Assembly: GCF_902713615.1 (NCBI RefSeq)
Contig: NC_052164.1
Location: 84,419,830 to 84,483,829, forward strand
Reading direction: 5' to 3'
DNA length: 64,000 nucleotides
Source of the DNA: Scyliorhinus canicula
Lineage: Eukaryota
Of this stretch, positions 8,481-59,878 are shown piece after piece. The notes beneath the pieces were generated by a model, which was not told where the DNA came from, ran no database searches, and was given only the letters and a program-made list of their open reading frames with translations. The position numbers and the translations under genes are program-made. Every line of letters starts with the position of its first letter. Within the stretch, counting starts at the first letter, position 1.

Positions 8481-9546
8481 CAGGCAATATTGGCCTGCTG
8501 CGAGATCACTGTTTGCTGAACAGCCTACATTTTGCCATTTGCTTGTCCTCTCTCCAGTCTGGCAAAAGGCCAAGACATGGCTATCATCATTTATTCAATT
8601 ACTTCCATCTAACCCAACAGGTCTTGTTCCAGTGGCTGGTGATGCTTTCCAACTCCAGAAAAGTCTCTGTCCCCGCTGGAAACCTTAATCCCAAAGAAAC
8701 ATAAACACATTCCCCACCACGTAGCTCATGATCACTCTCAAGTCAACAAGCATCACAGGAAGCCGAAGGAATGCATCGGAGAAGGGTATGGACCATCATA
8801 AAACAAAAATCAGATTTCAGCGTCAGGGGGCAATCTGTTGTCAAGTCCACTTCTGCTGCTGTTCCCAATCCAACCGTTCTGAATACCACCCGTGGGATTC
8901 TCCGTTCCTGCTCCGTTTTCCGAAGCGCCAAATTCTCCCTCCTCGCTAGCAGCGGCAGTGGGGTGGACCCGCAACGGAAAATAGCGGCCCACCCAGGCTG
9001 AGAGCAACATTCTGATCCCACCATAGTTAACTTTTAGCCTGACAAAGGTCTCACATGATGCACAAGCAAAACTTTCACGAGCAGCAGAAAAACAAAGCAG
9101 CCTACTACTAAAGCATGGGGACTGTAGATATTTATGGGACATTTGGTGGGGTCGAGTTTGTGGTTGAAAAACCTGTGAGTCCAATGACACTTGCCATTAT
9201 TCATGCACGAATAGTACAGCAAATTCAGGAAAGGACCAGATTTGTGGTTAAACACAGAAGGCTAGATTTTAAGGCCCCCCCGCTCCCTCACTGGAAAAGT
9301 CGAATGGAAACCAACTGACAATAAAAAGCTTCGCCCACAGTAATAGCAAACTTCGGACGGCAACAAGAAGGAAAGTGTGGGACTTCCATGCCTCAATGGG
9401 AGGAAGTCCTCTACCTGGGAGCTGCTGGTCAATCTGATTGGCCAGTGGCCCATGAAGTCCCGGTCGTGTCAGAGCTCAGTAGTAGGTGATGCCAGAGCTG
9501 CAAGCAAACAGGATGAAGGCCACAGTAGGTCCAGACTCAGGTAAGT

Positions 9547-9650
9547 CTTGTTTCAGCAGCACAGATACTAAAATTGGAATGACACAGAGAAGGTTAGCAT
9601 GGCCCCTACGCAAGGAATGATGCACAAATTTGTGAAGCATTACATATTTT
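9547..9650 (+). pseudogene. RNU6: U6 snRNA retro-pseudogene (near full length, diverged)
   Basis: CAGCAGCACAGATACTAAAATTGGAATGACACAGAGAAGGTTAGCATGGCCCCTACGCAAGGAATGATGCACAAATTTGTGAAGCATTACATATTTT aligns to vertebrate U6 including the ACAGAGA box and AGC triad; many changes are CpG decay; no upstream PSE/TATA promoter seen. Confidence 0.93.
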
Positions 9651-9967
9651 GGGGGCGGCACGTTGGCACAGTGGTTAACATTGCTCCCTCACAGTGCCAG
9701 GGATCTGTCTTCAATTCCGCCCTTGGGTCACTGCCTGTGTAGAGTTTGTATGTTCTCCCCGTGCCTGTGTCAGTTTCCTCTGGATGCTCTGGTTTCCTCC
9801 CACAGTCCAAAGATGTGCAGGTTAGATGGATTGCCCATGCTAAATTCCCCTTAGTATCCTGGGATGTGGTGGTTAGATTACGGGGTTATGTGTATTGGGA
9901 AGCCCAGATAGGTGCAGACCCACTTGTCCACGTGTCCATCTTAGGCACTGGAGAGATTCTGTGATTC
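9651..9967 (+). mobile_element. HE1-type SINE fused directly to the U6 3' end
   Basis: GGGGGCGGCACGTTGGCACAGTGGTTA head starts immediately after U6 ATATTTT; ends GATTCTGTGATTC. Confidence 0.88.
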
Positions 9968-10613
9968 TAAGTCAGCGGTATTGCGCTTGGAGAGATCGAA
10001 CATCTTGCGGGGGTGGGAGGGTTGCAGTGGTATGACGGAGGAAGGAAGTGGGTACAATTACTTGGGGGTGTCTCCAATGTGCAAAGGACACCATCCCAAA
10101 AATAGTACCTCCTTCCTACCTGCGTTTTTAAAAACTTTTTTGAAAGGATATGCTGCCCTCTCTCACTTCCTGCCCAGGCCAATCGTGTTATGGCATGAGC
10201 AGTATATTATTGGAGTAAGTTGGCAGGTGGGCTGCTAATTTTGGTGCCTGCCCAAACTCCGCAACGTGTTATGGGGACAGCTTGGGTGTAGCCAAGGTGG
10301 TGGCGGTCTTGCCATTCCTCGAAACACCTTCTTGCAGGCTTCAACCCTGAAATCCACCTGTTGCCATTTGAGTTGTGATGTTCCACCCTGAGCTTCGCAA
10401 ATAGGCCATCGAAATGCATTGAATTGTGTGAAGTTACTGTATTTGTAAGGAAGATACAAATTAAATTCACCACAGAAAGTTTAGTCTTTTTAGTTCAAGG
10501 TCAATTATTCTTGTAACAATGTGATGAATGTTAGTTGCTGAAAATTGACCTCTTTGACACTAAAAAACAACTATTACAAGCATAGCATCTCATTGCCTTG
10601 GGTATTAATTGTT

Positions 10614-11939: not shown

Positions 11940-12510
11940 GGGCGGGATTCTCCTTGGACCGGCGGGGCGGGCCACTACAGCGCCGAGGAGTGGCGTGAAC
12001 CACTCCGGCGTCGGGTCGGCTAGGCTGGCACCGGAGTGCTTGGCGCCGCGCCAGCCGGCGCGGAAGGGCTTGACGCCACGCCAACCGACACTGAAGGGCC
12101 GCCGCCGGCCGGCGCGAGTTGGCACATGCGCGGAAGCGCCATCGTGTGCTGGCGTCATCCCAATGCATGCGCAAGGGGGTTCTTCTCCGCACTGGCCGCT
12201 GTCAACCTCCAAAGGGAAAGAGTGTCCCCACGGCACAGACCCGCCCGCGGGTCGGTGGGCCCCGATCACGGGCCAGGCAACCGTGGGGACAGCACCCGGG
12301 GCCAGATGCCCCCCATGCCCCCCCCCCCCCCCCCCCCCCCGAAGACTCTGCAAGCTGCCGGTGGAGCCAGGCCCCACCGGTAAGAACCTGTTGTGATTTA
12401 CGCCGGTGGGAGCCGCCGGAAATGGGCGGCCACTCGGGCCATAGTAGGCTGGAGAATTGCCGGGGGGGCCGCTGCCAGCAGCCGTGTCGGGGGGTCGGAG
12501 AATTCCGCCC
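11940..12510. mobile_element. Harbinger-like MITE
   Basis: TIRs GGGCGGGATTCTCC / GGAGAATTCCGCCC; TSD ATG; related in reverse orientation to 3498-4128. Confidence 0.88.
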
Positions 12511-12548
12511 ATGGTCTTCCATCTTAGATCTGTGCATCTTAATCCATA

Positions 12549-13196
12549 GGGCTAGATTCTCCCGAAATGGGGCTATCTCCCCATGCCGGTGTCATAACGC
12601 CAGCATTGCACTCCCGAGTTTCCTCAAAAAAAGATAAACTGATTCAGTGCCCTGCAGGGGGCGAGCAGGGACCCGGAGTGATTCACCCAGATTTATCTGT
12701 GGATATGGGCCCCAGTACCTCCGGTCTGGAGTCCGTGCATGCACATGCCGGTGGCCTTCAGTGGCCGCGCCAAGCGCCATGGTGGTCTCGGACCGCGGAG
12801 GCAGCTCCAAACTGTAGGCCCCCGATTGGCCGCACGCTCTTGCATTGGGCCCCGATTTGACCCCAGGCCGCCCATAAGGCCCTCTACCGGTGCCTGATCC
12901 CACTATCCTGCACTAGGGTGGCGCGGACTAAGTCCGCAGCCGCCACACGCGGTTCCTGAAAGGCAATAGGTGGTTAGAACCACGTCATTGGGAACCTGGC
13001 CAGCTGGGAGTGGAGAATGGCTGTGCGTGCCTCTGGAAATGGCCCCCCCAGCTGAGCGGAGTAATTTGCGGAAAGGCCAATTCTCGGGTTCCGGAGAATC
13101 ACCGGAGCGGCGCCGGGCCCGATTTCGGCTCAAAAGTTGATTCTCCGCTCCTGTGCCAAACGCGATTTTGGCACGGGGCTGCAGAAAATCCAGCCC
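12549..13196. mobile_element. Harbinger-like MITE
   Basis: TIRs GGGCTAGATTCTCC / AGAAAATCCAGCCC; TSD ATA. Confidence 0.85.
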
Positions 13197-19177: not shown

Positions 19178-20467
19178 GCAACACACAGTGGTTCGCACTG
19201 CTGCCTCACAGCGCCAGGGAATTGGGTTTGATTCTGTCCTTGGATGACTGTCTGTGTGGAATTTGCACATTCTCCCCTTGTCAGTGTGGGTTTCCTCCGG
19301 ATGCTCCGGTTTCCTCCCACAGTCCAACCAAAGATGCGCGGGTTAGGTGGATTGGTCATGCCAAAATTGCTGCTCAATATCCAAAAGATGGGCAGGTTAG
19401 GTGGGGTTACAGAGATAGTGGGCCTAGGCAGGGTGCTCTTTCAGAGGGTTGGTGCATGTTGCTCGTTCTGGGTGAGTGTGCTTAACACTCAATTTGGCTC
19501 TGTTTCTTTACTTAGCTCTGGAGTCGCCAGGTATCGTTAAGATACCGCCACAAGTTTCAAGGTGAAGTTCAAAGCAATAAACCATACACCAATTAGTAAG
19601 TTCAAACAACTGAGTTTATTATAATACAATTATAATAACTACCCATGCACACACTAAAAGGATTAAACTATTCCTACCGCTAAATAAACTAATACTTATC
19701 TCAAAGGAACTGCTGGATCAGGGAACAAGGCCTCTTACTCTGCTCTGGTCTGCAGACTTCAGGTTGGTATAAGTTAAAAGGGGTCAAGAGTGTCTATCTC
19801 TGGTAGCGATCGTTGTGAGACACTTACTTGCTGGCGGCTGCTGTCCCAAAACCTCTCTCTCTCTCCTTCAGGGTCTTCTTGGCAAAAGCTGGTCGAGGTG
19901 CTGGTCCACGGAGGAGTGCTGGTCAAGGAGAGAGGAGGGCTAGACAAGAAGACTGAACCATGTGTGGGACCTGTCTTTTATAGGTCCCAGGGATCCGCAC
20001 CCCTTTGGGCGGACTCCCTTACCTGCTCAGAATCGAATGGGTCTCTTCCCAATCGATATGTTTGAATCCCCCCCCAATACTGAGACTGTTCCTTAGCTAT
20101 TGGGCGGGCTTTCAGGCTCTTTGTTTTCGAACCCTGCTGGTGCCTGGGTGTCTGGTATCCTTTACAATGTTGCAGTTACTTCCCCATTTGTGTCCATTGT
20201 CTCTGGAATTGTTCCATTAACATGCTAACTATCTCGGAGATTGCCTCATTAGTATGCAGAATGTTCGTTTCGGTGCTGTCTGCTTTCTTAGCAGGTAGAA
20301 TCCACACTTGCTTGGTGCAGCCTGCTGGTGCTGCAAACATTGTCCATTTTATCCTATATGCTTTGCGTTCCTCCGTTTTGTTTTTAGGGAATGGCCAACT
20401 TCGGTGGCTACATGCAGACTCGATGGGCTGAATGACCTCCTTCTGCACTGTAGAGATTCTATGGATT
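19178..20467 (+). mobile_element. HE1-type SINE split by a solo LTR
   Basis: SINE reads ..GGTTGGTGCA | TGCAGACTCGATGGG.. across the insertion. Confidence 0.85.
19457..20412 (-). mobile_element. solo LTR, 956 bp (ERV-like)
   Basis: Ends TGTTGC...GCTACA; 4-bp TSD TGCA; AATAAA on minus strand; related copy at 30791-31650. Confidence 0.88.
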
Positions 20468-24300: not shown

Positions 24301-25105
24301 ATGGAGCTGTCGGAAAACATGTGCCATAGGAGACTCAGCCTCACCAGGGATACTGTGAGGTACCCGTGCCACATATTTACTGACGTGGCACCATGTGATG
24401 GTGGCAGACACCTGCTCCCTCTGATTGTGAAGGTCACGGCAGCCCTCAATATTTACGCAATAGGGTCGTTCGAGGGCTCTACAGGTGACCTGTGTGGTAT
24501 CTTGCAGCTATCCGCCCAACAGTGAATCCATACACTTTATGCAAAACCTTTTGACTTTATTCATTTTGACCTGGACCATGCCCATCAGGACAAGAGGGCT
24601 ACAGGATCCGGCACATAACTGTTCAGTCACAGGTTCAGGGGGTGATCGACTGAACCTGCATTGCTCCATGAATCCCATGGTATCGGGGAGACCCATTCTT
24701 CAACAGGAAGGGGATCCACTCCATCAATTACCAGCTGGTGTGTGGCCACCAGATGTGGATCATGCACGTGTGTGTGCACATTTTCCAGAGAGCATGCATG
24801 ACCGTTCCACCCTGGGGAAATCGCAGATCCCTGGCATTTCTGAGGGTAACCCCAGGCTGCAGGGATGGCTTGTTGGGGACAAAGGTTATCCGCTGAGGCA
24901 TTGGCTGATTACGCCAGTGCAGATACCTGAGACCACAGCAGAGCACCAGTACAGCGAGGCTCACAGTGCCACCCAGTCTGAGCGGTGCATTGGGCTCTTC
25001 TCAGAAGATGCACTTCTGCTGCCTCGACAGTGTGGCTCTTCAGTACAGTCCCCATAGGCTCTCTCACTGCTGTGCACTACATAACCTGGCTCTGCAGTGG
25101 GGCGA
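24301..25105 (+). pseudogene. Harbinger (HARBI1-like, DDE_Tnp_4) transposase, frameshifted
   Basis: KVTAALNIYAIGSF..GDLCGI; FNRKG.HSIN.QLVC; FPESMHD; GWLVGDKGYPL..WLITP; ERCIGL; CCALHNLA. Confidence 0.9.
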
Positions 25106-29479: not shown

Positions 29480-30105
29480 CTGAGCTTGTGGCACCCTCAT
29501 TTCTGAGTCAGAAGGTTGTGAATTCCAGTCATACTTTAGAAACCTGAGCAAAAGGCTGACACTCCAGTTCTCTACGAGTAGAGTGCTGTATGGTGCAAGT
29601 CCCATCATTCGGATGAGACAAGAAACAAGGTCAAGTCCATCCTCAGTTTCCTCCCACAGTCCAAAGATGTGCAGGTTAGGTGGATTGGCTATGCTAAATT
29701 GCCCTTAGTGTCCAAAAAGGTTGGGTGGGGTTGGGTTACAGGGATAGGGTAGAGGTGTGGGCTTGGGTAAGGTGCTCTTTCCAAGGGCCGGTGCAGACTC
29801 AATGGGCTGAATGGCCTCCTTCTGCACTGTAATTTCTATGAAACTATGAAACTTTCAGGTGGGCAGCATGGGTCCCATGGCATTGTCCTAAAGAAGGACA
29901 GGGGAAATCTTCCCAGTGTCATGGTCGATATTAATCCCTCAGTCAGCATCACTAAAAGAGATGAAATCACTTACTTTGTTGCTGATTGTGGCGTTGTGCT
30001 ATCTGCAAACTGGCTACACCAGTAACCAGATTTCAAAGGTCCTTCATAAACTGTAAAAATCATTGAAATGTGTTCCTGGAGTTAGGAAAGATGCTACATA
30101 AATGA
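29480..30105 (+). mobile_element. old Deu-domain SINE (SacSINE1/AmnSINE-like), split by an HE1 SINE 3' half (29645-29850)
   Basis: CTGAGTCAGAAGGTTGTG..GGCTGACACTCCAG..TTCGGATGAGAC..TCAGGTGG..CCCATGGCA..ATCCCTCA..CATCACTAAAA motifs. Confidence 0.7.
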
Positions 30106-51152: not shown

Positions 51153-52534
51153 CCCTGTAAAATACTTGTGGGTTATAATGTCCTTCCTTCCCAAAATTCC
51201 GAAGACTCCGCCGATATCTGTGCGGAACGAGGTAGCCAGACTCTCTTTGCATCTGGTTGGATGTTGTGCACCCAAGGTTCCGGAACGGATGGCGTGAACC
51301 TGGAAGGCAAATGCTGCTTCAGAGCGGAACGCCTCGGTGGCTCTTCCGCCCGTGTGCTGTTCAATCCCCATCAGAGATTTACGATGCTTGAGTTTCCATT
51401 TCTGAATCTGTGTCCACGACGTCAGTCATCTCTGCATCTTGACCCCTTTGGAGCCCCATTATGGGCTGCCGCAGAATCAGAGTCTGCTGGATGAGAACTT
51501 CCTGCTCACGAGAAAACCTTCAAAGAATTGATTGCCTGGACCGAAGATGATCAAGTTGCTTTCCCGTGATCCGACCTTGAACTTGTACCTGCTAGGAAAC
51601 TGGCCCTGTCTGTCTGGCAAAGGATAGTCCCAGAGATGCACTGGGCACCATCTGCAAGTTTCAAATATACGCTGAATCACCTGGTCCAAAGGGTCTGGGT
51701 GTCGACATCAAACAGGGCAGCATCCTTGCAGCTCCTGGTTCCACCTATGTCAGGGAAAATCATATTAAGGTGAGTTTGAAGCCTACACCCCATCAGCATT
51801 TCAGCCCCCCCCCCCCCCCCCCAATCACTGCGTGTGGGGTAGTCCTGTCGCAAAATAAGCAACAAGCCAGCCTTGTGTCCATCGAACTTGAAGATTGCTT
51901 CTTGAGACCTCTTTTGAATGTCTCTACCGCCCGCTCCGCTAAACTATTAGAAGCCGTGTGGTATGGGGTGGTACAAAAGTACCGTATCCCATTCACTTTC
52001 AAAATCCCTGAGAAATCCTCACTTGTCTGTAACAAGCACTTCAGGGGTATCGTGCGTGCAAAGTGACAATTGCAACTTCTCGATTGTTGCCTGGGAGGTG
52101 GTCGCCAGCATCCTGTGGACGTCCAGCCATTTTGATTGGGTGTCAATTATTAAGAGGAAGATTGAAATGGAACAGCAAAGGCACCATCCTGGCCATTCCT
52201 AAGGGTGAAGGGGCACAGCCAGTCGGTGTTTCTGGTGCTTCTGATAGACTGAGCATTGCTAGATCATCTTCTCAATGTCCACATCCAGGCCCAGCCACCA
52301 GATGTAACTGTGTGCTAACATCTTCATTTTGGACACCTCTGGATGTCCATTGTGGAGGTCTTTTAATATCAACTCTTGGCCCTTTTTCTTGAATGACGAC
52401 GTGTGTACCCCATAGCAGCATATTGTTCTCCACGTGTAATTCTGACAGTGAGACAAAAACGGCCTTAACTCACCTCGTGGCAGTCGATGTTAACCTACAT
52501 ACAACACAATGTGTCAAACCTTTGCGAGAACCTG

Positions 52535-53350
52535 GGGCGCAATTCTCCGACCCCCATGCCGGGTGGGAGAATCGCGGGAGTGCCGGGCGATTCCCGCCAC
52601 GCCGCCCTGGCACCCACACGCGGGGCGCAATACCCCGACCCCCACGCCGGGTGGGAGAATTGCGGGAGTGCCGGGCGATTCCCGCCATGCCGCCCTGTCA
52701 GCCCCCCGCGATTCTCCCACCCCCCCCCCCAAAACGGCGTGCCGCGTTTCACGACAGGCCGCTCGGAGAATCGCCGCTCGCCGTTTGTAGCAGGCAAGCG
52801 GCGATTCTCCGGCCCGGATGGGCCGAGTGGCCTGCCCAATCCGACGGGTTCACGCCGGTGCTAACCACACCTGGTTGATGCCGGCGTGAACAGCGCGCGT
52901 ACGCTGCATGTGTGGCCTTTGGGCGGGGGGGGGGGGGGAGGATCGAGCACCAGGAGGGCACTCAGTAGGGGTCTGGCCTGCGATTGGTGCCCACCGATCG
53001 GCGGGCCGGCGTCTCTAAAGGAAGCACTCTTTTCCTCCGCCGCCCCGCAAGATCAATCCTCCATTTCTTGCAGGGCGCCTGCGGGGAGGACGGCAACCGC
53101 GCATGCGTGGGTTTGGCGCCGGCCAACCTGCGCATGCGCGGGTGACATCATTTATGTGGCGCCGGCCGTGTAATATATGTGGCGCCGCTTTCATGCAGCG
53201 CCAAGGCCCGGCATGCGTAATTGACGCGCAGCCGCTCCTAGCCCCCTGGTGGTGGGAGATTAGGGGGCGAGGAGCAGCCTCCGATGCCAGAGTGAAACAC
53301 TCCGGTTTTCACTCCGGCGTCGGCACTTAGTCTCCCGATGGGAGACACCA
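52535..53350. mobile_element. Harbinger-like MITE with tandemly duplicated left end, inserted in Gypsy pol
   Basis: GGGCGCAATTCTCC start; about 88-bp unit repeated at 52534 and 52622; right TIR damaged. Confidence 0.78.
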
Positions 53351-56300
53351 TGACAGACAAAGAGTCCATGAAGTTTAGAGCAGCGACCACTTCATCCGGC
53401 CAGGGGCACGATGTGGGGCTGTGGGGCTAGTCAGTTACGGCAAACGGCTCAGTGAACTGGCATTCGCTATCTGGGCCCCGGCCGATGTTCGAAAGAATAA
53501 TCATAGGCGGGCAATAGCAGGGCCCAGCGTTGGATCCTCATGGAGGCAACGGGCGGGACTGCTTTGTCTTCATTAAAAAGTCTGTGTAAAGCCTATGGTC
53601 CATAATAATAGCGAAATGGTGTCCATAAATGTACTGATGAAATGTTTTCATGCGTTATTTACTGCCAGACCTTCCTTTTCGATCTGTGCATATTTCCATT
53701 CGTCCGCAGCCAGTGCCTGAGAGGCAAAAGCAATCGGCCGTTCCCCGCCATTCTCCATCCGGTGTGGCAGGACGGCCTCAATACCGTAAGGCAATGCGTT
53801 GCACATGATGAGTAGGTTTGGCAGGATCGTAGTGGGTCAGTAATCCGGAACACGGTTGCGGGGTTCAAGATGAACATGCCGCAATAGTAAACTACTCCTA
53901 AAAATGAATCAAGTTCTGAGGCGTCTGTCGGAGTGGGGGCCTGCTGAATGGTGCACACCTTGTCCACGATGAGTTGTAAGCCTTCGCGGGCCACTCCATA
54001 ACAAAGGTAGACAACTTCCCTTGCACTGAGGACACATTTCGCCCGCCACAAGCAGACACCAGACTCAGAGACACGTTCCAGTACTGCCTCAAGGTTCACC
54101 AGGTGCTCTCGTTTGGTCGCTCCGTGCCCATCACGTCATCTAAATAAACCGGCACGTGCAGCAACCGCCTCAGGGTGTTCTCCATGACTCATTGAAATAC
54201 AGCACAGGCAGAGGACACCTCGAAAGGCAGCCGAGTGTACTGGTACAGTCCTCTTTGAGTATTTATCATAACATATTTCCGGGAGGCCACATCCATCTCA
54301 AGCTGTAAATATGCACGGCTCGTGTCGAGCTTCGTGAACAAACGTCCACCCACCAGCTTCTCGTAAAGATCTTCAATGCGGATATGGGCTAGCGATCCAA
54401 CCTTAAAGCTGTATTGTCTGGTTTTAACAGCAGCACCACCAACGCTGCACAATCTGCAAAACTGATGGGTCTGATTGCACCCAGATTCTCCAACCTGCTG
54501 AGTTCAGTTTCTATTTTTTCCAACAAAGCATAGGGGCCTGGCCATGCCCAGAAATACCGAGGTTGGGCTCCTGAGTCAACATAAATGCGAGCTACATCCG
54601 CTTTAATCTTCCCCAGTCCGGGTTGAAATACTTGGGGGGTACATGCCAAACACTTTGCTTAAGCTCCCAGACCCCATCCGGAGGCTGCACTACCAATTTC
54701 GCTGTAAATGGCTCAACCAGTCACAACCCGACCCGACAAACTTGGGATTTGTTCCCCGACCACAATAAATGAGAGGCGCACTGATTGATAACCATAAAGC
54801 CCCGGAGTCTTGGTAATACCTGCAATGTCCAATGATTCACCATTGTCGGTGGCCGAACGCGGCGTTAAATCGGTTAGGTCCAAATTCTGTATTCCTTGTT
54901 TAATGCAGTCAAACATACTCTGCCCCACAACGGAAACTGCCAAGCCAGTGTCCAGTTCCATGTCCAGCAAATCCCCGTTCACCTGCACCGTAATCCTTAT
55001 GGGGGCCAGCCGAGGCACCGTCACGCAATTTAACTGCATTCAGTCATCTTCTCCAGGCTCATCCATGTGGAAGGCACAGGTTCTGGGCTGATGTCCACCT
55101 CTACCGAGGCACCTGGATCTCTAGTTGGGCTGCGTTCTGCACTCTTGCCTGGGCCGGTGACCACACACCTTGCCCTCAGCGGATTCCGGGGCGGTTTCCC
55201 GTTAGAATGCCAATGGATCGTGCCTTTAGGGCACTAGGTCCAAGGCAGGATAGTGGTCAGGGATGGGTTCTGTGCCTAGAGGGGGCGCAACCTCTCGCAT
55301 CTACTTCCACGCCTTGTATTTCCTGAACCCCTCGCTCTGCGCTTCCTCGGGACAGCAAACTTTGTATGGCTTGTTGCACATTCACGGAAGTTCAACCAAT
55401 AGTTTCTTTTGGATGGCTGCATTGTTAATGCCGCACACTAGACGGTCTCACAGCACTTCCTGCAGGGCAATGCCATATTCACAAAGCTCGGCAATCTTGC
55501 ACAGCCTGGACAATGTCTCGGTGACGGACTCACCCGGGGTCTTCTCTGCAATATTAAAATGATACCGCTGTATGATAATGGATGGAGTTTGGTTAAAGTG
55601 CTGCCCCACTAAAGTGACTAATTGGCCCAAAATTTGGGTGTTCGACGCCGCCAGGTAGATAAGGCTTTGTATCACTCCGAACGTATGTGTGCCACAGGCA
55701 GTCAGCAAGATGGACTGTCTGGCGATCATTCTCTGTGATATTGTTTGCTCTGAAAAAGTAACGCATTCACTCCATATACTGATTCCAGTCTGCCAAGCTG
55801 GTGTCAAGGACATCTAACCGTTGATCAGAGATATAATGAAGAGAAAATTCTAACATTTATTCAACAGGGACCAGGAGATGGCTTATCCAATAGTGCAGCA
55901 ATGTTGATTCAGTTTGACCCTCATCGCCAGTTTTATAAGGCCACAAAGGAGACCACACTGAGTAATTCAAGGAAACTTAATTTATTTGCAATAACTATTA
56001 TATACTTCACATGGTAGATCCCAACAGTCTTTCCTGCCAGTGTCTAACAGGCCAGTTTTATATATCTTACAATTATACATTGTTCAGAGGAACTCGTATT
56101 CTGCAAGGTTCACAGGGACATTACTTGTTCGCACCCCGTAAGATACTTGTGGATTACAACAGTCTGACTTAGTTCATGTTCAGAAATACTTTCTCTAACA
56201 AGCCACCATCACCACCAATAAGAACACTAATTTGCAATGAATTCCGGTGATTTTCTCTTTCCCCACAAAATAGTCACAATCAAAGGTTGCTCTCTTTCAA

Positions 56301-56467
56301 GCTCCGTAGGTTAAGGGGAGATTTAGGAGAGGTGTTCAAAACCCTGAAGCATTTTGATAGTTGAGAGGAGGAGAAACAGTTTCCAATGGCAGAAAGATCG
56401 ATAACCAGGGTACATGGGTTTACAGCAATTGCAAAAGTGCCAGAGGTTATATGAGAAAAAATTATTA

Positions 56468-57775
56468 TGATCAGGCCGGTTAGCCTGACTTCAATTGTTG
56501 ATAAGATTTTAGAGTCTATTATTAAGGATGAGATTGTGGATTACTCAGAAGTGCATGGTAAAATAGGACTGCATCAGTACGGATTCTTCAAGGGGAGGTC
56601 ACACCTGACAAACCTGTTAGAATTCTTTGAGGAGGTAATGAGGAAGTTAGACAAAGGAGAACCAGTGGACGATATCTATTTGGATTTCCAGAAGGTCTTT
56701 GACAAGATACCGTAAAGGAAGCTGCTAAATAAGTTAAGAGCATATGGTGTTCGGGGAAAAGTATTGGCATGGAAAGAAGAGTGGCTGACTGGCAGAAGGC
56801 AGAGAGTGGGGAAACGGGGTCCTTTTCAGGATGGCAGCTGGTGACTAGTGGTGTTCCGCAGGAGTCAGTGCTGGGACCATAGCTATTTACAATATGCATT
56901 AACGATCTGGAAGAAGGGGAAAAAAAAGGTTAGGTGGGGTTGCTGGTTTATGGGGATGGGGTGGAGGCGTGGGTTTGGGTGGCGTGCTCTTTCTGAGGCC
57001 TGGTGGGAGACTCGATGGGCCGAATGGCCTCCTTCTGCACTATAAATTCTACTACTCTATAACTGAGGGCATTGTTGCTAAGTTTACAGCTGATACAAAG
57101 ATATGTAAAGGGAGAGGTTGTACTGTGGAAGCAGAGAGGCTGCAGAAGGACTTGGACAGGTGAGGAGAATGGGCAAAGAAGTGGCCGATGGAATGCAATG
57201 TGGGAAAGTGTGAGGTTATGCACTTCGGTAGGAAGAATATTTTCTAATAGGCGAGTTTCTAAATGGGAAAAGGCTTTGGAAGCCAGAAGTACAAAGGGAC
57301 TTAGAAGTCCTAGTTCAGGATTCTCTTAAAGTTAACATGTAGGTTCAGTTGGCAGTTAGGAAGGCAAATACAATGTTAGCATTCATGTTGAGCGGGTTAG
57401 GATACAAGAGCAGGCATTTACTGTTGAGGCTGTCAAAGACTATCGTCAGACCCTATTTGAAATATTGTGAGCAATTCTGGGTCACGTATCAAAGGAAGGA
57501 TGTGCTGGCCTTGGAGAGGACCCAGAGGAGGTTCACAAGAATGATCCCCAGAATGAAAGACTTGTAATATGAAGAGCGGTTGAGGACTTCCTGTGCTCAA
57601 TAGCGTTTAGAAGAATGAAGGGGGGTCTCATTGAAACTTACAGAATACGGAGAGGCCTAGATAGAGTGAACATGGAGAGCATGTCTCCACTCGTAGGAGA
57701 AACTAGAACCCGAGGGCACAGCCTTAGACTAAAGGGACGATTCTTTAAAACAGAGAAGAGGAGGAATTTCTTCAA
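56468..57775 (+). mobile_element. CR1 LINE RT fragment interrupted by an HE1 SINE 3' part (56920-57055)
   Basis: RPVSLTSIVDKILESII; YLDFQKVFDKIP; KFTADTK; RPYLKYCEQFW. Confidence 0.9.
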
Positions 57776-59282: not shown

Positions 59283-59878
59283 GGGGCGACACGGTGGCGC
59301 AGCGGTTAGCACTGCTGCATCACGGCCCCGGGTCACTCTCTGTGTGGATTGGATTGGATTGGATTTGTTTATTGTCACGTGTACAGAGGTACAATGAAAA
59401 GTATTTTTCTTCGAGCAGCTCAACAGATCATGAAGTACATGGGAAGAAAAGGGAATAAAAGAAAATACATAATGAAATGAAATGAAAAATGAAATGAAAA
59501 TCGCTTATTGTCACGAGTAGGCTTCAATGAAGTTACTGCGAAAATCCCCTAGTCACCACATTCCAGCACCTGTCCAGGGAGGCTGGTACGGGAATTGAAC
59601 CGTGCTGCTGGCCTGCTTGGTCTGCTTTAAAAGCCAGCGATTTAGCCGAGTGAGCTAAACCAGCCCCCATAATATAATAGGGCAACACAAGGTATACAAT
59701 GTAACTACATAAGCACTGGCATTGGATGAAGCATACATCGAATTGGCACGTTCTCCCCGTGTCTATGTTCGTCTCACTCTCAAAACCCAAAGATGTGCAG
59801 GGTAGGTGGATTGGCTGTGTTAAATTGTCCCTTAATTGGAAAAAGAAAGAATTGGGCACTTTAAATTAAAAAAAACTT
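59283..59878 (+). mobile_element. HE1-related SINE containing a LINE 3' end (-, about 59346-59737) that contains a family-B SINE (-, 59474-59667)
   Basis: Outer head GGGGCGACACGGTGGCGCAG resumes at about 59740; middle element ends GTGACAATAAACAA(ATCCA)n; inner SINE TSD CATAAT. Confidence 0.78.

Follow-up and report, generated by a model that had tools for sequence, protein, structure and literature searches.

Chimeric pseudogenes that combine U6 snRNA with L1 sequences were reportedly described in mammals by Buzdin in 2002 and by Garcia-Perez in 2007. Two routes to such U6/L1 chimeras have been put forward, namely template switching in the course of reverse transcription and the RtcB-mediated joining of U6 RNA, which carries a 2′,3′-cyclic phosphate, to an RNA with a 5′-OH (PMC6789731). 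Ligation is dramatically reduced when a 5′-triphosphate is present in place of the 5′-OH, and the L1 parts of ligated molecules are typically 5′-truncated fragments (Moldovan et al. 2019, PMC6789731). Chimeras containing U6 are informative, as they show which LINE machineries switch templates or take ligated RNAs.

Partners other than L1 have been reported as well. In the platypus, U6 forms chimeras with L2 and with Mon-1 that are flanked by TSDs of 1-9 nt, and in a lizard chimeras of U6 with L1, L2 and RTE LINEs were found together with six that contain AnolisSINE2, while in the turkey one U6 located beside a CR1 element was inconclusive owing to a gap (Doucet et al. 2015, PMC4476161). From these data the authors concluded that U6 template switching is general among non-LTR retrotransposons (Doucet et al. 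2015, PMC4476161). A preliminary description of the locus studied here had proposed that it would extend the formation of U6 chimeras beyond L1; as L2, RTE, Mon-1 and AnolisSINE2 are on record as partners (Doucet et al. 2015, PMC4476161), this step had been taken before. Two further systems are close to the arrangement described below. For the origin of PittSINE in passerines, a switch of the CR1 reverse transcriptase from TguSINE1 RNA to a tRNA has been proposed (Suh et al. 2017, PMC5729268), and the crocodilian SINEU elements constitute SINE families headed by U1 or U2 (Kojima 2015, PMC4494074).

The sequence studied is a 64-kb stretch of the genome of Scyliorhinus canicula (NC_052164.1, GCF_902713615.1, positions 84,419,830-84,483,829 of the forward strand), hereafter referred to as the window, and all positions given below are counted from its first nucleotide. 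It harbors a U6 copy followed by a SINE, with the following features:

9542-9547, + strand: 5′ copy of the putative TSD TAAGTC, the last 3 nt of which overlap the start of U6 (direct reading, placement test)
9545-9650, + strand: U6 snRNA retropseudogene (RF00026; cmscan/Rfam)
9651-9652, + strand: two extra G residues between the U6 T-tract and position 1 of the SINE (sibling alignment, motif search)
9653-9967, + strand: full-length tRNA-headed V-SINE/HE1-like SINE (BLAST copies, sibling alignment, motif search)
9911-9949, + strand: decayed remnant of the tail hairpin (sibling comparison, folding)
9957-9967, + strand: CR1-type terminal repeat, comprising the perfect octamer TTCTGTGA at 9957-9964 and a subsequent TTC (direct reading)
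9968-9973, + strand: 3′ copy of the putative TSD TAAGTC (direct reading, placement test)

The U6 part was detected by cmscan as a match to the Rfam model RF00026 at 9545-9651 on the + strand (79.7 bits, E 1.3e-18, model positions 1-105 of 105). Besides this match, no second one was obtained in the whole 64-kb window at the gathering threshold or with E<=1. The copy terminates with ATATTTT at 9644-9650 and is practically full length, since its 5′ end is short by 0-3 nt only, which can be read either as a full-length end minus one deleted G or as an end with three bases missing. When compared with vertebrate U6, the copy differs by about 14 substitutions, 6 of which are CpG transitions, and by two single-base indels, which amounts to a divergence of about 13%. 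The ACAGAGA box has been preserved, whereas the 5′ stem-loop has decayed and several invariant positions are mutated. In addition, direct reading of the 65 nt upstream of U6 (9480-9544) revealed neither a TATA-like nor a PSE-like motif, although a decay of about 13% could mask one. As the 5′ stem-loop and several invariant positions are lost and no upstream promoter is visible, we reject a functional U6 gene, and the U6 at 9545-9650 is a dead retrocopy. Moreover, by direct reading neither a poly(A) nor a LINE-type tail belongs to U6 alone; thus, under a stringent LINE, U6 could have entered the genome only by way of a tail-bearing RNA, and without a TATA or PSE its transcription on its own is hardly conceivable.

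The element downstream of U6 belongs to a repeat that is abundant in its surroundings. BLAST of 9542-9973 against the window yielded about 15 other copies of the SINE, distributed over both strands. Full-length siblings open with GGGCAGCAC or GGGCAGCACGGTGGCACAGTGG, and in the sibling alignment, which included the flanking sequences, as well as in the motif search this motif aligns at 9653; position 1 of the SINE was set from three sibling heads. In this copy, the A box (TGGCACAGTGG) is located at 9664-9674, and the B box (9708-9718), which reads GGTTCGATTCC in the siblings, has decayed. As compared with the siblings, the copy has lost about 20-30 nt internally. The SINE core at about 9791-9851 represents the most conserved block across the copies in the window, and at 9967 the element ends with GAGATTCTGTGATTC. 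V-SINEs share a conserved central domain of about 80 bp, and on the grounds of its architecture and its core we tentatively take the element to be an HE1-like V-SINE. In published tables, HE1 represents the V-SINEs in sharks and rays; it is headed by a tRNA and has HER1 as partner LINE (PMC3747384, PMC4824008).

The 3′ part of the SINE deserves closer consideration. In three siblings, a hairpin of the form GUGCAGA...UCUGCAC is located directly before the octamer repeats, and the sibling tails finish in (TCTATGAn) repeats. In the copy adjacent to U6 the corresponding sequence reads GUGCAGA...UUAGGCAC, and its hairpin fold is no better than that of shuffled sequences (z = -0.04). The 3′ terminus of CR1 elements is formed by 1-4 octamers ATTCTRTG / TTCTGTGA (St John and Quinn 2008, PMC2612034; Suh et al. 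2017, PMC5729268), and TTCT, the four bases directly 3′ of the perfect octamer, agrees with the insertion-site preference of CR1 (PMC2612034). Judged from its sequence, the SINE tail bears the signals that a stringent LINE requires, namely the hairpin, as present in the siblings, and the octamer. A tail-only copy of this hairpin/octamer tail is located at 20431-20452. The same tail motif is found about 330 nt downstream of, and on the same strand as, an RVT_1 fragment at 56467-57044 (+; E 4e-6, 27.1 bits, under the Pfam cut-off of 29.6). This fragment may be what is left of the LINE that served as partner of the SINE.

Several other repeats were observed in the window. An ORF at 24485-25054 (+) matches DDE_Tnp_4 with E 1.7e-5, at the Pfam cut-off, and is, by this similarity, likely a remnant of a Harbinger/PIF-type transposase. 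The sole ARAGORN call, a 90-nt ‘tRNA-Phe (aaa)’ at 59480-59670 (-), is the tRNA-like head of a SINE from another family, the body of which reads ...GGTGACTAGGGGATTTTCGCAGTAACTTCATTGAAGCCTACTCGTGACAATAAG and the tail of which is (CATTT)n. The copies c6502, c18900 and c40236 of this family share the V-SINE-like head, but carry the (CATTT)n tail. At 29810-29880 (+), a SINE tail that ends in (TCTATGAAAC)2 is followed 8 nt further on by an apparent SINE head of identical orientation (GGGCAGCATGGG...), which suggests that SINEs were stacked head to tail, possibly via an insertion preference for tail repeats. The regions 12000-13000 and 52000-54000, with a GC content of 0.55-0.57 and many overlapping ORFs on both strands that have no Pfam match, may represent CpG islands or repeats of high GC content.

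No host gene was detected by the Pfam analysis of 20 ORFs, which returned only the DDE_Tnp_4 and RVT_1 fragments. For two flanking ORFs an exact look-up matched no record. The 5′ junction at 9538-9546 reads CAG/GTAAGT, a perfect 5′ splice-site consensus that is built from the flank and the first bases of the TSD and U6. There is no sign of an exon ending at this site, and the upstream frame stops at TAA 9542-9544.

At the junction between the two parts, both of which lie on the + strand, the U6 run of four T (to 9650) is followed by GG (9651-9652) and by nucleotide 1 of the SINE (9653). The preliminary description had U6 joined without spacer to the first base of the SINE. The common orientation, the full-length SINE and the ATATTTT end of U6 stand, and the lack of a spacer is correct but for the 2 nt GG. 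A short ORF runs across the junction in a frame that is closed by a stop in canonical U6. The two G residues may have been added in an untemplated manner, or the SINE transcript may have begun 2 nt upstream. 31-mers spanning the junction (query 9621-9680, two sampled words) were retrieved from 6 runs of 2 samples in 2 studies, all of them of the source species, and from no other source. Since the spanning words are present in independent read sets of two samples, an assembly artefact is ruled out as the origin of the junction. A young family elsewhere is not indicated; as two words only were sampled, however, the absence of junction words elsewhere proves little. A wider query gave partial matches in two other organisms too. 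Eight metagenome contigs matching a degenerate pattern of U6 end and SINE head were dismissed as chance matches, as 0 of the 8 contained U6 by Rfam.

The confinement of the junction words to the source species, albeit for two sampled words, bears on one explanation of the locus, according to which it represents a copy from a composite family, founded by a master U6::SINE element and multiplied as a whole in the manner of the crocodilian SINEU. SINEs headed by snRNAs are indeed known (Kojima 2015, PMC4494074), and a full head in front of a full SINE is the anatomy expected of a composite family. However, a U6 head is present on none of the about 15 other SINE copies in the 64-kb window, which also lacks any other U6-like stretch. 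Moreover, the promoter of vertebrate U6 is an external type-3 Pol III promoter, and transcription from the A and B boxes of the SINE would start at SINE nucleotide 1; thus, a U6 head would not be inherited by daughter copies. The U6-headed family, which the preliminary description had offered as an alternative, is therefore without support in the window, and we consider it unlikely.

The precise adjacency of the two parts could also have been established at a source locus, if a SINE had been located past the terminator of a true U6 gene and a Pol III co-transcript had been retroposed via the SINE tail. Such read-through would yield the identical anatomy, a run of four T is a weak terminator, and the extra GG could then be flanking sequence of the source locus. 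Nevertheless, it requires an equally improbable exact adjacency at the source gene, and a U6 gene with a SINE after its terminator has not been seen. We regard this origin as highly improbable.

As to the borders of the insertion, the preliminary description had regarded the repeat TAAGTC as consistent with a single TSD. The repeat is present at both outer edges, and no repeat of at least 4 nt surrounds either U6 alone or the SINE alone; its weight as a TSD is nevertheless reduced by the following results. When an insert of the same length was placed at 20,000 random positions in the window with both boundaries floating, an abutting repeat of at least 6 nt occurred by chance in 1.35% of the placements at +/-3 nt and in 3.35% at +/-5 nt. 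Furthermore, GTC of the 5′ copy corresponds to nucleotides 1-4 of U6 (GT[G]C), and TAAG of the 3′ copy is readable as a degenerate second tail unit (ATTCTAAG as compared with ATTCTATG in the siblings). As a part of each copy is attributable to the element itself, their weight is limited, and the repeat, being only moderately above chance as a TSD, is suggestive but not strong. Such an overlap would be expected if microhomology had been used at the start and at the end of target-primed reverse transcription. In addition, TSDs of CR1-type insertions are often short or missing, so that the TSD discriminates poorly between the possible histories of the locus.

This holds true in particular for the question whether the two parts arrived separately, that is, whether a SINE inserted directly after an older U6 copy or U6 directly before a SINE. 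SINEs are dense in this region, with about 1 per 4 kb, and the lack of separate TSDs is compatible with this history, as CR1-type insertions may leave none. Four full-length SINE heads are present elsewhere in the 64-kb window, and at this density, independent insertion is expected to bring a SINE head on the same strand to within +/-2 nt of the U6 3′ terminus with a probability of about 1.6e-4, which argues against separate arrivals. We also compared the decay of the two parts. The SINE of the chimera shares 67-75% identity with its siblings, as compared with 69-81% between the siblings. With a SINE decay of about 13-16% per copy, estimated from these sequence identities, as compared with about 13% for U6, the parts look about equally old. 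When a crude majority consensus of 7 heterogeneous siblings is used instead, the SINE appears 22% diverged as compared with 13% for U6. This excess would favor separate insertions, yet it provides only mild counter-evidence to an equal age, since subfamily differences inflate the figure. For a lone U6 devoid of poly(A) or LINE tail there is no obvious insertion route; without a U6 promoter, it is not a gene copy either; and the 6-nt repeat brackets the pair and not its parts. Two independent insertions are thus very unlikely.

Taken together, we infer a single event: an old, dead, one-off chimeric retrocopy produced by the reverse transcriptase of a CR1-type LINE is the best reading of the locus and probably the correct one. 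The insertion as one unit, as suggested in the preliminary description, is hence borne out as the best reading by the junction within 2 nt, the missing promoter and poly(A) of U6, the missing part-only repeat and the similar decay. The evidence base for the single event is one locus with one decayed copy, and such a locus is an anecdote until U6 junctions have been counted genome-wide.

The enzyme and the order of events can be inferred from the anatomy of the locus. The reverse transcriptase of a stringent, CR1-type LINE would prime on the hairpin-plus-octamer tail of the SINE RNA at a nicked target, which may be written roughly as CAGG/TAAGTC/AGCGG; the predicted pre-insertion site is CAGGTAAGTCAGCGG, in which TAAGTC occurs once. 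The enzyme would then copy the SINE to its extreme 5′ end, move onto the oligo-U end of U6 and copy U6 through to its 5′ end. Finally, the cDNA would be joined to the upstream end of the target, possibly by means of the GTC microhomology.

For the step that connects the two RNAs, we slightly favor an end-to-end template jump over the ligation of U6 to the SINE RNA prior to reverse transcription. Apart from the two G, the acceptor corresponds to the first base of a complete Pol III transcript, for which a 5′-triphosphate is expected, whereas RtcB needs a 5′-OH. Ligation following 5′ processing of the SINE RNA is possible. RtcB accounts poorly for a join at the very first nucleotide of such a transcript, and the locus bears in this respect on the debate on ligation versus template jump. 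It is conceivable, though we deem it doubtful, that the reverse transcriptase of the CR1-type partner LINE in this shark regularly jumps from the 5′ end of the SINE onto Pol III RNAs that end in oligo-U, such as U6 and pre-tRNAs. If so, small-RNA::SINE chimeras would constitute a recurrent class that scatters copies of small-RNA genes genome-wide, and the present U6 copy would be a visible outcome of it.

How does the single chimeric retrocopy favored here compare with the known systems? It has several features in common with the mammalian U6/L1 chimeras (PMC6789731), in which a full-length U6 is likewise fused via its T-tract to the 3′ part of a retroelement; one TSD, which is only putative at the present locus, surrounds the pair. 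In contrast, their L1 part is 5′-truncated at variable points, ends with poly(A) and is flanked by long TSDs, whereas the SINE at the present locus is intact, poly(A) is absent and the repeat comprises 6 nt. RtcB ligation to a 5′-OH fragment has been demonstrated for the mammalian chimeras (PMC6789731), whereas the acceptor is here the end of an intact Pol III transcript.

Crocodilian SINEU elements resemble the locus in that a retroposon independent of L1 begins with snRNA sequence. They differ in that their heads are derived from U1 or U2 and that they were amplified as families, whereas the head is U6 in the present case and the chimera is a single copy within the window. In the case of PittSINE, as in the reading favored here, the reverse transcriptase would have copied the RNA of a CR1-mobilised SINE first and a small RNA made by Pol III second. 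The switch, however, replaced the SINE head in PittSINE and founded a family, whereas in the dogfish locus the SINE stayed complete and gained U6 at its front, apparently a dead end.

A resemblance is also seen with the U6::Mon-1 and U6::AnolisSINE2 chimeras, in which U6 likewise precedes, in common orientation, a SINE that is moved by a stringent non-L1 LINE. Poly(A) is absent in both cases and the TSDs, putative in the dogfish, are short, and the authors invoke template switching (PMC4476161). With the platypus U6-L2 chimeras, in which almost all are 5′-truncated, the locus contrasts by its essentially full-length U6, and it differs from the platypus and lizard U6 chimeras in that the junction is with nucleotide 1 of a full-length SINE. 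With regard to the tail, that of U6::Mon-1 and U6::AnolisSINE2 is of the L2 type, whereas the tail here is of the CR1 type, consisting of the hairpin and TTCTGTGA, and the chimera resides in a cartilaginous fish. This host and the tail of the CR1 type are the only new features of the locus, and the mechanism was already known. The chimera would thereby add a CR1-type tail to the record of L1, L2 and RTE and put the phenomenon back to the base of the jawed vertebrates.
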